Positions 53,213 through 58,180 of a DNA stretch of 64,000 nt are shown here, piece after piece (positions within the stretch are counted from its first letter, which is position 1; every line of letters begins with the position of its first letter). Below the pieces are notes generated by a model that searched no databases, was not told where the DNA came from, and saw nothing but the letters and a program-made list of their open reading frames with translations. The stretch is from Saccostrea cucullata (Eukaryota). The stretch is taken from positions 1,054,001 through 1,118,000 of the forward strand of contig NW_026920581.1 in NCBI RefSeq assembly GCF_032062105.1. The letters are read 5' to 3'. The position numbers were made by a program, and so were the translations under genes.

Positions 53213-54780
53213 TTAACAGAAAATATCATAATTTGACAAGTCCATACTGACATTTGATGTATAAAAACCTATTTCCTTATAAAGATCATTGCAAACCAAA
53301 TCCACTTCTTCGATAACCTTTTTAGAAAGGGTGCTTTTCCATGCATTGGCAACATTTCTAGACTGGGTTTTACGGACGTAGAAAGAATCTTTAGCAATCT
53401 CAGGCTTTTGATTTTTAGGTTCTGTTGTAAAAGTACTACTTTTTCCACTGCTGCGAGTGGTGTGGTCTAAGATCCAGTTTTCTGTCTGTTTGGAATATTT
53501 CAATCCAAGAATACCAAACAATTTTGTAGCCACGACTGTTGGATCCGAAACCATACATTCAAAAGTTAATGGCACAACGCTGCCCTTCTTCTGTCTCATT
53601 TCATCCTTTACGAAAAGAACGTCTGAATTCAAAAGATGACACAAATGACGGGCAGATAAGTACATATTGTTGTCATTTACTTCACCAATCTTTCTCCGAG
53701 AGTTTAAAATGCCTAGTGGATGTCGAATCAAATGCACAACTTTTACGTCATGTACAAATGATTCAACTTCCTTTAGAAGCCGTGGTGACAGACGAATAGT
53801 CTTGATCACGCGTGCGCTCGCTTCCTTGCAGGCTCTTTTCCAGCGAGTGAAACACCAGTCCTTTCTGTTTTCATAAAGAACTTGTTTCTTTCGACTCTCC
53901 CTATTTCTCCATAATTGCTTTTTAGACAAAATCGATTTACAACGTCTACTGTACCCACTGGTGTAAGGAAAACTTGTGAAACTCTTTAAGACCTCTAGTG
54001 GCAGGTCAGAGATTCGACAGTCAAAAATCGCCTCTAAAATTGACATAGTTTTGTTCGTCTTGTGCAGTTGTTTGGTCGGTGTACTGAAAATATAGATTTT
54101 ACAGTTCTTTCTTACATTATCCAACTGGTTCTGTTATTATTAAAAATTATTTTACATGTAACATTTTTCTCTGTTGTGATTCTTACTGACAAGTGCCGTT
54201 TCGGAAACAAACTTCAGTGTCCGTGCGGAAGGATTTCTCATACACCGACCAGAATGGCTCGAACACGTAGAAGACATTTCCACCAAACTTCAGAAGTTCT
54301 CCCACGAAGGAAGATCCACTTCTCATGTAAGTCATCAACAAGATTTTGGATACGTTTTTTGGATAAGTTTGATCTGGAAATTTAAAATAAGTTTTCTGCA
54401 TTTTGTTTGGCAACCACGTCGGAAAATAATCCCTTTTTACCTGCCCTGAAGATGCAAACCTTATTTAGTCTTTTTACAGCAAATCCAAACATTGTAAAAT
54501 TTAACTTACGCTGAAGTGTTAACTCTTTTGCAGATATAAATGCTGACATTGGTTCTACTGGCTGGTTGCCATGGCGATAGGTGTTGTTATACGTCTGAAA
54601 CACTTAGAAATGGCCTTGAGTAGATTGTAAAGGTATAAATTGACCAAGATCGTTACAAGAGTAAAAGTTTGGTATTTGTTAAGACCTACCAATGAGAAAA
54701 GTTAGAGCACAAGAGATAAGAAAAACAGCCAAGGTCGCCCAGATCTTTTTCCTTTGTGGTTTCCTCATTGCTGGTAACAT
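53213..54780 (-). CDS. Carbohydrate sulfotransferase, Gal/GlcNAc-6-O-sulfotransferase (CHST1/3/4/5)-like, type II Golgi membrane protein (~413 aa)
   Basis: Exons 54780-54690 (MLPAMRKPQRKK + TM IWATLAVFLISCALTFLI), 54602-54510, 54373-54187 (5'-PSB TYMRSGSSFVGELL, FYVFEPFW), 54083-53213 (VIKTIRL, 3'-PB KVVHLIRHPLGILNSR); 1242 nt in phase. Confidence 0.88.
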
Positions 54781-55041: not shown

Positions 55042-58000
55042 ATGGATCTCCATGGTGTGCTAGCGATTTTCGTGGTAATTTTGCATCTCTTTGTAAATGA
55101 CAGCAATGGATTTTTATTCAAAAGAACGATTAAGGAAACTATAGAAGCTCTAAGTTCAAAGATAGAGGACCGGCTCCCAAAGAAGGACACCAAGCCACTT
55201 ATGTTACCATGGACACTCAATAAAGGGACATATGAAAGTGTCGTGAAATTGAATTTTCATGGAACACCGGAAATGGCTGCTATCCGCGAAAACTTCGAAA
55301 TTAACGACAACAACATGTTTGTGACGGCCTGGATTACGGCATGTCTCCTGGAAATCCAAGCTTTAGGTGGGGAATTCAAACCAAAGAGGGAGCAGATAGA
55401 TTTAGCCGTAGAAGCTATAGGTAAGATTCTATCTACTTCGAGAGAAGAAGCTATTTCAGGATGTTTGTTTTGATGAATGTTGGTGAAGTGGCACTTTATA
55501 ATTGATAACAAAAAAAGTATATGTCTGTGTTTTCTTTGTTCCAACCTGTATTGTTTAAATGAACTTTTGAGCTTGCCTAATCGTTCTTTATTTCCATATT
55601 TCATTAGGAAAGTACCACGACAAAAATGTCAACTACAACACATCTGTGATGACGTTTTGGCCACAAATTTACAATGAGACCACCAAGACTTGGCAGAGTA
55701 CTCCAGAAAATCTGTTACAGCTGTTTGATATGACCGATAAGTTCCCGGCCAAGACGGTGGAGGACCTGCTGAAACTTATTGGGCTGAAAGACGTAGCCAC
55801 AGTCATGGAAAGTCTGCTGAAAGAAAAGTAAGTCTGTAAGGGCACGACTATAATCAGACGTACCAGTATAACGATCTTTGTCAGATGTATGCTTTGAGTT
55901 ATAAACAATTAATACAGCGTAACCGGGTGTACTAAACCAAATGTTCCGGAGTAAAATGAATACTGAGATTCTTTTTTATTATAGAGGGATATTTTCTGCA
56001 GCATTCCATATTCCTCCAGACTTTGATGATACCTTTGTCAACATAGGGCTAGGTTCTCTCTTGAAAGGAATCCCCGAGTATAATGACTTGTACAACAAAT
56101 GGAGGGACACAAACTCAAACGTCACCTCTGTGCTGCAGGCGCTGAAGAAATACGCCTATAGACCGCTCTCTAACAACACTCGAGTGAATACCATTGATAC
56201 TCGGACGTACTTCTATCTTCACCGTTATCTGGCGCATGCCAATAAATCGGATGCAGTATTTGTTCCAACATGGGTATGTTTAGAACACGTAGATTCTGTA
56301 ACATAACCATCAATGGAAATTGGACGTGGCTAGATATTTGGACCAACGCTTTTGGTTCGATAATGACATCAGTCAGATCCAGCAAAGCCGAATTTCAGCT
56401 AAGACCGTCTTCTTTGCTTTCTAGGTACAAGATACAGGTGAAGCGTTAAAGCTTAGTGATAAAGGCGTGGCTATGCCATTTTGGGTTAATAACGTCGACG
56501 TCACTGTTGCAACCAATACCATAAATGGTTTGACATCTGGGCTACTTTCTGGTCTTTTTCAACCAAGTGATTTTGACAGCGATATTCAGGTACTTGCAGA
56601 GATGTTACCCATAAAAATACTAATTCAGTCTGTAAATTTGATAATTCTTGTTCTATAGACTGATTCACAAATGAAAATCACACTTTGCTGGTAAACCTTT
56701 CTGACAATTTTATTACAGCACATTTACAGAGATACAGTAGACTTGATAATTTACGAAATCACGAGGAATTTTTCGTCTCGGCGAGACTTGGCACTGACGT
56801 ACTATCCATCTAAGTTTGAATGTTTCTGGTTTACCTCTCGAACGCTGACAACCTTGCGTGACTTTTACCAGAAAGCCCCTCTGCCATTCAAGGTATCGTA
56901 AAAGTTTTGCATTTCACATTTCTCCCATTATAAAAACATATTTAACCCTCTTCAATAAAACAACTTAATATACATTGTTCTTTTTGAAAAGATGCTTGAA
57001 GATGTCATGCAAAAGCTTGAGACCGCCATGAAAAACGAAGTTACAGCTGACATTTTGCGTGAAGCGTTGAAATCCGAGGACGGGGGAATCTTCTTCGATG
57101 ATTTTCTCGGAGATGGTGATGTAAACTCCAAAGGACAAATGATTGTAAATGTTAAAATTGACGACTTTCTGAAAAATTTTAGATTGGTGGATTGAAATGT
57201 TCATTTATTATATTGACCATAGAGAATTCATGAAAGGTAAAAAGTGAGATATCACGACCCAGTAAAAAGTGTATCATTAATTTTTTCTGGTATAATTCTG
57301 TTTACTTGATTAGAAAAATGGAGAAGATAGATTGTTTACAACGTCAATGGCAATCAATACACTTATCAACGTCTGGACAAAATCTACTGATGGTGGACTT
57401 GTTTTACTAGAAGGTGAAGAACTTACATCTAGCTCAAGATAACTTGAGAAGACTTTAAACGAATGGATCTTTTTTATATAAATGATGAAAACCATGTCAG
57501 AATGACCCCTTTTGCTTGAAACAGATACGCCGGTTTCAGTAAACCAAACAATCCAGCAGAGTGTGAAATGGTTAAATGACAACATCCTTGGTACTCATCT
57601 GAAGCCATGGAACGCCTTCTTTTCAGGTTCCGGCAAAGGAATAGAGGTATGCGTATTCAGTGATACAAGCTAGTTTCTATCATAAAAACAAAAGACCAAA
57701 ATTATTTCCAAAGAATGGGGCTCTGAAAGATGCATCATTTGAGAAAACTTTAACAATTTATATCAACGCTAGATTTGCATTCTTGCAATCACTAGAATCA
57801 ATGTTACGATGGAAAATGGTGTTCGCATATGAGGTGATGGAGGAGAAGAAAGCAAAAGGCTTTGCTTTATGTTTGATTGTATATTTCAGAGTATGCCGTT
57901 TTGGTATCCAGCTAATCGAAGACAATATTTAAATGGGACTGGTTTCAATGACACGGTGCTGCCACACGGACCATTTCTTGTGGGTTTCCAAGGAACCACA

Positions 58001-58180
58001 TCTGATGCTGAATATAATCGTCTGCTTGCAGAGCCTCATTTTGGGAAGAAAACCCCTATTGACTTTCGCGGGTTTAATCCTTTAGATTCCCCAACAGGAT
58101 TTTTTCCATTCTGGTCGTCTGATGCATATACTTATTCAACAACAATGTTGGCATTTGCAAAATACCTAAAAATTCATTGA
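55042..58180 (+). CDS. Uncharacterised secreted glycoprotein (630 aa, 9 exons) with terpene-cyclase/prenyltransferase alpha-alpha barrel-like motifs (PDFDDT)
   Basis: Exons 55042-55420, 55608-55827, 55985-56273, 56425-56589, 56719-56892, 56992-57144, 57314-57413, 57525-57646, 57890-58180 (1893 nt, all phases consistent). Signal peptide; 9 N-glycosylation sequons. The gene model is solid; the function is inferred. Confidence 0.85.

Follow-up and report, generated by a model that had tools for sequence, protein, structure and literature searches.

A nine-exon gene of Saccostrea cucullata encodes a member of an uncharacterised eukaryotic protein family that we interpret, with modest confidence and largely from models of its homologues, as a monodomain acid catalyst of the class II terpene cyclase type, acting in the secretory pathway and built on a beta-domain-type fold. 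The gene lies on the forward strand at positions 55042-58180 of the window, i.e. the whole stretch of 64,000 nucleotides that was analysed (NCBI RefSeq assembly GCF_032062105.1, contig NW_026920581.1, positions 1,054,001 to 1,118,000). Its product of 630 residues contains the sequence IPPDFDDT, and an earlier note made from the DNA letters had described it as a class II terpene cyclase-like protein. This interpretation is supported by the predicted fold, the conservation of the motif and the structural neighbours, from which the function is proposed at the level of a model. That the substrate is an isoprenoid appears somewhat less likely than acid catalysis as such. The novelty would lie in a fold and an acid motif that are known from class II beta domains but occur here in a new eukaryotic and secretory family, invisible to existing profiles.

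A eukaryote-wide family with an invariant acid motif

We built an exon-3 profile from the window sequence together with four paralogous copies in the same 1.17-Gb genome. Among 1.84 billion representatives it matched 268 proteins at E<=0.001, of which 141 reached E<=1e-10 and 16 reached E<=1e-30. Full-length members are typically 620-690 aa long, with the exon-3 segment around residue 200. We aligned 46 of them (alignment and profile A2; residue numbers such as D207 follow P0007, the 633-aa member from Mya arenaria). The A2 profile matched 186 proteins. Those listed, 120 in number, are either eukaryotic or unnamed metagenome/Logan sequences, and none of these 120 carries a precomputed Pfam domain. 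Named members come from molluscs (gastropods, bivalves, cephalopods and a chiton), from other animals (three Branchiostoma species, Patiria, Amphimedon, and monogonont, bdelloid and seisonid rotifers), and from protists (Anaeramoeba, Vitrella, Rhabdomonas, Protocruzia, Thecamonas and two dictyostelids). They are annotated as uncharacterised throughout, with the exception in UniRef of the Vitrella protein, which is named 'GH63 C-terminal domain-containing'. A search of the accessible literature found no publication on this family, and a survey of the cyclase superfamily published in 2025 refers, in its accessible part, to monodomain cyclases from bacteria only. We describe the family as uncharacterised, eukaryote-wide and of about 630 aa.

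Sixty alignment columns show the same residue in 85% or more of the 46 homologues, and the exons in the window have this family residue at 59 of them. The aspartates of the DxDD motif, on whose conservation the proposal of the earlier note depended, are indeed retained: D207 and D209 are invariant in the aligned members (46/46), and D210 is present in 44/46. When searched as a regular expression, P-x-D-x-D occurs in the expected region of 170 of the 177 family proteins of 560-800 aa, with 162 having DxDD and eight having T, C, S or G at the third Asp. Three of the seven missing proteins belong to A2; as these aspartates do not vary in A2, the three misses are due to the proline. Variation at the third Asp is known from cyclases, with T in AstC and AsDMS (DxDT) and C in oxidosqualene cyclase (OSC; DC).

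A secreted or lumenal location had also been proposed, and the family agrees with it. Of the 161 members of 600-700 aa, 148 have a hydrophobic segment at the N-terminus, as against 16/161 for an internal control stretch, and just 4/161 have a further membrane-like segment. These proteins have a median of eight N-glycosylation sequons each, and a sequon after the P-x-N motif recurs in 131/161. Long N-terminal extensions occur in P0060 (Heterostelium, 1249 aa), P0075 (Cavenderia, 1014 aa) and P0126 (Thecamonas, 989 aa).

Predicted fold and structural neighbours

The AlphaFold2 model of P0007, obtained from alignment A2, has a mean pLDDT of 94.1 and a pTM of 0.93. It is mainly a helical barrel into which several beta-hairpins are inserted, with insertions of about 300 residues altogether, and it places the DxDD directly before helix 208-223. 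At the level of this model, the fold is shown to be an alpha/alpha toroid, with a single (alpha/alpha)6 barrel nearest to the beta domains of cyclases, as the earlier note had anticipated. For structural neighbours we relied on an exhaustive structural aligner, because Foldseek gave nothing at E<=0.001. The matches to the full P0007 model were as follows (GH, glycoside hydrolase; SHC, squalene-hopene cyclase; rmsd, root-mean-square deviation):

AsDMS (9mhs), Z 26.7, rmsd 2.7 A over 299 residues
PtmT2, Z 24.8
8paj, Z 24.1
SHC, Z 23.6
Rv3377c, Z 23.5
MstE, Z 23.2
Tpn2, Z 23.2
6ij1, Z 22.9
Human OSC, Z 22.7
SsDMS, Z 21.9
GH105, the next best after the cyclases, Z 19.4
GH9, Z 18.4
GH76, Z 18.2
Thioester domains, Z about 16-17

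The top matches are therefore all class II cyclases, ten with the full model and nine with the model of a fragment, P0027 (see below), and their rmsd values (2.7-3.6 A) are lower than those of the glycoside hydrolases (3.7-4.7 A). Leads from the ESM Atlas have AstC-like_C and SQHop_cyclase_C as the nearest named clusters, and the closest structure outside the family belongs to a bacterial 'squalene cyclase C-terminal domain' cluster (TM 0.59 by query, 0.78 by match).

These neighbours bear directly on the possibility of an (alpha/alpha)6 carbohydrate-active enzyme, either a glycoside hydrolase or an unsaturated uronyl hydrolase of the GH88/GH105 type, in which the Asp would hydrate a C=C bond of a sugar and which would serve, as a secreted or lysosomal protein, in polysaccharide digestion by filter feeders and phagotrophs. 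GH88/GH105 enzymes have an alpha6/alpha6 barrel like that of the family and are often secreted, and an Asp at about the same place in the barrel protonates a C=C bond in their reaction. Such an enzyme would be in keeping with the secretory signal, with the large number of sequons, and with the Asp, Asn, Arg and aromatic residues that are conserved where helices begin. Moreover, glycoside hydrolases are the next-best structural neighbours, and in the fragment search the GH88/GH105 alignments begin at about residues 77-84, close to D88 of Bacillus UGL, which we take to be its catalytic Asp. However, cyclases lead both model searches and superpose with lower rmsd, whereas GH88/GH105 enzymes score lower (Z 19.4-13.2) with higher rmsd, have no DxDD signature and give no profile match; P-D-x-D-D-T/S is instead a class II cyclase signature. 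As for the UniRef name of the Vitrella member, Pfam scans of this protein gave no GH family, and we rejected a GH63 identity; no GH63 chain is present among the 50 structural matches listed, and at E<=10 the 46 members, Vitrella included, are without a match to a GH Pfam family, the (alpha/alpha)6 families considered being GH63, GH88/GH105, GH9, GH15 and GH76. The glycoside hydrolase alternative, which the earlier note had put forward as the main competitor, is thus weakened, and we regard a carbohydrate-active enzyme as unlikely.

Placement of the acid motif on the barrel

The structural searches return alignment ranges and no residue pairs. Because the barrel repeats internally, and both these ranges and hhalign leave the register ambiguous, we modelled P0027, a natural N-terminally truncated member of 440 aa with DFDD at residues 12-15 (pLDDT 92.2). 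Its alignments start at the following positions of known cyclases:

SHC (1gsz), first aligned residue 366; DVDD at about 374-378, from the printed alignment
OSC (1w6k), first aligned residue 445; acid presumably D455
AsDMS (9mhs), first aligned residue 298; acid D323
MstE (6sbb), first aligned residue 90; acid D109, from the entry title
SsDMS (8zg0), first aligned residue 283; acid D303, from sources including the entry title
PtmT2 (5bp8), first aligned residue 294; acid-motif position assumed by us
Rv3377c (6vpt), first aligned residue 274; acid-motif position likewise assumed

The alignments thus begin 8 to 25 residues ahead of the catalytic Asp of the cyclases. Gapless extrapolation, in which the register comes from first-aligned-residue ranges and not from residue-level superposition, puts the middle Asp of the family 3 to 12 residues from each known acid. 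Since neighbouring inner helices are at least 45 residues apart, offsets of this size argue for the equivalent barrel helix. We infer that the DxDD would cap the N-terminus of the helix corresponding to the DxDD helix of SHC, OSC, MstE, AsDMS, SsDMS, PtmT2 and Rv3377c. A location of the motif on a variable surface loop would have spoken against the cyclase reading; D207 and D209 are invariant and, in the homologue models, are placed on the equivalent of the cyclase acid helix.

These data also bear on a possible artefact, namely that AlphaFold drew a generic helical toroid and that the DxDD is a product of chance or convergence. Two independent models both have a pLDDT above 92, cyclases are at the top of both searches, the invariant motif falls on the equivalent helix of seven cyclase structures, and the chance occurrence of P-D-x-D-D-T per 630 residues is about 3 in 10,000, as estimated from residue frequencies. 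We consider such an artefact very improbable.

Comparison with known cyclases

Among known systems, MstE-like cyclases share IPPDxDD with the family. The monodomain cyclases MstE (6SBB) and Archangium 8PAJ have about 350 aa, as compared to about 630 aa in the family, which is longer because of its large insertions. With respect to MstE, 8PAJ and a set of 12 cyanobacterial MstE-like monodomain sequences that we assembled (A4; seed open reading frames, ORFs, of 352-383 aa, with relatives added), the family differs in being eukaryotic, in having a signal peptide and N-glycan sequons, and in giving no significant profile match. AsDMS (9MHS) and AstC are HAD-fused drimenol/drimenyl synthases, whereas the family lacks a HAD domain; the HAD-fused drimane cyclases are described, in the accessible part of the source, as cytosolic and capped by the partner HAD domain (PMC13244436). 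Finally, SHC and OSC (1GSZ, 1W6K) are monotopic membrane proteins with a beta-gamma didomain architecture; they match PF13243 and PF13249, neither of which is matched by the family.

The A4 profile provides a bridge to cyclases at the sequence level. I-P-P-D-x-D-D is present in 12/12 of its sequences, and it matches 16 PDB sequences, all of class II cyclases (SHC at 1e-26, OSC at 3e-15, MstE at 0.001, and also 8pak, 8paj, the SsDMS type and Rv3377c), which identifies A4 as a cyclase group. When aligned with the family by hhalign, A4 gives a probability of 5-7% (P 0.005-0.007). The top-scoring Viterbi block coincides with the motif (A2 204-221 against A4 111-128), at a score of 30.2 and P 0.007; none of 20 column shuffles reaches this score (11.3-18.5), nor does the reversed profile (14.6). 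With the motif and everything upstream removed, the best block pairs the QQSVKWLNDN helix (P0007 497-515) with the last QW helix of A4, with a score of 22.3 and P 0.037 (0/25 shuffles reach it, maximum 20.9; reversed profile 12.9). The motif block and this QW-type block are colinear between the family and A4, and their direction agrees, weakly, with the structural result. The canonical Q-x-x-x-G-x-W was not seen in the family consensus. The A4 sequence DPxHPEVxANLL resembles VDxSVxANxL of the family, a pairing that comes from a low-confidence alignment.

A weak alignment also links the IPPDxDD block of A4 to PPDLD in the SHC gamma domain (SHC residues 78-119). It is an old idea that the beta and gamma cyclase domains are duplicates, and this alignment would fit duplicates with an ancestral motif.

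Points weighing against the cyclase reading

A number of observations weigh against a class II cyclase-type catalyst, the first group being the scarcity of sequence similarity. In Pfam, the nine exon peptides give chance-level matches only, and no domain family is matched by more than one of the 46 aligned members at E<=10; among 10 full-length homologues, eight have no match, one a chance DUF5457 and one ankyrin repeats. In particular, PF13243, PF13249 and PF00432 match neither the exons, nor the 10 homologues, nor the 46 members (E<=10). PDB sequences gave no match at E<=10, either for exon 3 alone or for the family profile, and the latter has no match at E<=1 in five SHC-bearing genomes; hmmsearch --max against 81 cyclase-like ORFs reached a best E of 0.21. 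By hhalign, the probability for the family against cyclases is just 0.9-7%. An alignment to 30 squalene-hopene cyclases, tried as a test of register, gave 0.9% and allowed three different inner helices to be placed on the SHC motif, and was set aside. Furthermore, nothing but the motif block contributes to the score of the family against A4, since 30 block shuffles that keep the motif score equally well (28.1-38.7).

Second, the structural work used natural homologues (P0007 and P0027) instead of the window's own protein, the register of the acid helix carries the offsets given above, Foldseek against the PDB returned a list of mixed toroids with no match at E<=0.001, and in the fragment-model search the margin is small (cyclases 14.7-17.4, GH105 13.9, SsDMS 13.5). 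Third, many of the conserved residues are polar (D84, N86, D267, R269, N316, N317, D372, R390, D467, R468 and K533) and would suit a sugar-binding site too. Prenyl diphosphates are cytosolic, so that no substrate is obvious in the secretory lumen. Lastly, ankyrin repeats are present at residues 374-614 of Heterostelium P0060, the dictyostelid member scanned; such extended, ankyrin-fused versions would be cytosolic, and the secretory location is therefore not uniform in the family.

Proposed mechanism and the possibility of other chemistry

In the reading that we favour, the invariant middle Asp of IPPDFDDT would serve as a Bronsted acid, donating a proton to a C=C bond or an epoxide in a lipophilic substrate. 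This substrate, probably an isoprenoid or meroterpenoid, would be held in the aromatic-rich centre of the barrel, and the loop and beta-hairpin insertions would cover the active site, a role that a gamma domain would otherwise have. Catalysis would occur extracellularly or within the secretory pathway. In AstC the acid is hydrogen-bonded by N324 and Y361, a role for which N325 and Y378 would be the candidates in the family.

The same fold might alternatively support different chemistry or no catalysis at all, as in a lipid or cofactor carrier, or an acid-driven isomerase, dehydratase or epoxide opener. Transcobalamin and the thioester-containing domain (TED) of complement are alpha/alpha toroids as well. 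We examined 21 small bacterial PF13243-like ORFs as possible bridges to the family, and abandoned them as such, only 1/21 having a DxD-type motif. These secreted proteins have the fold but, for the most part, no motif, and cyclisation does not follow from the fold by itself. On the other hand, the strong conservation of 60 columns in a length of about 630 residues, together with invariant acids across distant eukaryotes, argues for catalysis rather than simple binding, and the CGEQ thioester motif is absent from the exon translations of the window gene. Membership of the complement/alpha-2-macroglobulin thioester domains, which combine this motif with flanking macroglobulin domains, is not supported. 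We give this alternative a low probability, similar to that of a carbohydrate-active enzyme.

The bacterial loci L128-L147 contain many ORFs of 300-490 aa with weak PF13243 matches, several of them with signal-peptide-like N-termini, and these make up a large group of secreted toroid proteins.

Gene structure, targeting signals and transcripts

The gene was predicted as an intact nine-exon reading frame, and this structure holds. The exons total 1893 nt, i.e. 630 codons and a stop, and all eight introns are GT..AG with mutually consistent phases. The nine exon peptides are colinear with residues 23-627 of P0007, at 38-56% identity. The features of the gene, all on the forward strand, are:

55042-55420 (+), exon 1: start codon, signal segment and DNNMFVTAW motif (equivalents of family D84/N86/F88); 3' joint in RNA
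55042-55110 (+), predicted signal peptide, about residues 1-23, from hydropathy; cleavage site guessed from small residues at -3/-1
55608-55827 (+), exon 2: MTFWPQ motif (family F138/W139); both joints in RNA
55985-56273 (+), exon 3: IPPDFDDT, YAYRP, NTIDTRTY and TW; joints in RNA
56019-56033 (+), DFDDT (DxDD motif), the middle Asp at 56025-56027 being the candidate general acid
56425-56589 (+), exon 4: MPFWVNNVDVTVATN (family N316, N317, D319, V322, N325); from homology and RNA
56719-56892 (+), exon 5: RRDLALTYYPS and FTSRT (family D372, Y377, Y378, P379, R390); from homology and RNA
56992-57144 (+), exon 6, long form of 51 codons: RNA joint 57144/57314; length in agreement with the family consensus
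57314-57413 (+), exon 7: GEDRLFTTSMAINTL (family D467, R468, N477); from homology and RNA
57525-57646 (+), exon 8: QW-type helix QQSVKWLNDN and NAFFSGSGKG (family F528, S529, S531, K533); 5' joint in RNA
57890-58180 (+), exon 9: YPANR, conserved NGT sequon and FPFWSS; stop codon 58178-58180

Exon 3 is the most conserved, with 55% identity to paralogues in the same genome. All the motifs that the earlier note had quoted were found in its order in the exon translations: DNNMFVTAWI (exon 1), MTFWPQ (exon 2), IPPDFDDT (exon 3, DFDDT being at the coordinates above), NNVDVTVATN (exon 4), YYPS (exon 5) and QQSVKWLNDN (exon 8). Kyte-Doolittle hydropathy, taken over 10 residues, peaks at 3.34 in the N-terminus, MDLHGVLAIFVVILHLFV. 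As to N-x-S/T sequons, the nine that had been claimed hold for the mature protein; the whole protein has 10, including one, NDS at residues 19-21, with which the signal segment ends. From its sequence, the protein is supported as a family member with a predicted signal peptide and predicted N-glycosylation.

Spliced joints of introns 1-7 of 8 are present in contigs of the RNA run X3 at the predicted borders, after cut-offset correction, and three of these seven recur in raw oligo-dT reads of X22 (12 reads); intron 8 lies outside the RNA coverage. The joint 57144/57314 establishes the longer form of exon 6. Runs X21 and X23 gave no reads for the gene, whose expression therefore looks low or limited to certain tissues. 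Forty exonic differences between RNA and window are listed, 33 synonymous and 7 non-synonymous, with nine further ones outside this list; the predominance of synonymous changes points to a high allelic or strain diversity under purifying selection. The 33/40 synonymous differences, together with the 59/60 conserved family residues retained, argue that the reading frame is not a chance one. Over window positions 55074-57523, the X3 contigs differ at about 1-5% of exonic positions.

Neighbouring gene and paralogues

A Sulfotransfer_1 gene at 53213-54413 (-) and the barrel gene are arranged head to head, with about 630 bp between the former and the start codon of the latter. The sulfotransferase gene consists of two ORF pieces, the larger one matching PF00685 at E 5.9e-8 and the upstream one having an RSGSS-type motif. 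We discarded the idea of a two-gene module, as 0/24 sulfotransferase matches fall on the seven contigs of this genome that carry barrel paralogues.

At least three further distinct copies of the barrel gene are present in the same genome, two of them in tandem on contig C9179. The paralogues are:

Contigs C9179, C7193, C2623, C9714, C12386, C4658 and C14282; loci L002-L007; 37-63% identity per exon

Some of these contigs resemble allelic duplicates of each other. At L006 and L007 the exon-3 match ends at residue 63 with an in-frame TAA, which could reflect a pseudogene or a different exon structure.

Implications

To our knowledge, bacteria, fungi and plants are the sources of the known class II terpene cyclases, oxidosqualene cyclase apart. 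Superfamily surveys, as far as the accessible parts of two of them indicate, depend on PF13243, PF13249 or IPR018333 (PMC9290348, PMC13483135). Such profile-based surveys would miss the present family, which matches none of those profiles. It is conceivable, although we hold it to be doubtful, that animals and many protists possess an ancient family of class II terpenoid cyclases in the secretory pathway, overlooked by such surveys and expanded in molluscs.

Hundreds of eukaryotic proteins combine a predicted cyclase beta-domain fold and an invariant acid motif with a signal peptide and glycan sites. The family would be a natural test of how monodomain cyclases shield their active site, a question raised for MstE in the accessible part of PMC12414744. 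Were these proteins hydrolases or hydratases instead, the DxDD acid machinery would have been reused for another reaction; in either case, a large 'dark' family gains a testable assignment. If they are cyclases, terpene cyclase chemistry would take place in a compartment without any known terpene cyclase, and the family could include the missing animal cyclase for the de novo drimanes, meroterpenoids and other cyclic isoprenoids of marine invertebrates. Animals may thus possess an unrecognised type of class II cyclase, which would offer a new place to look for cyclic terpenoids of animal making.

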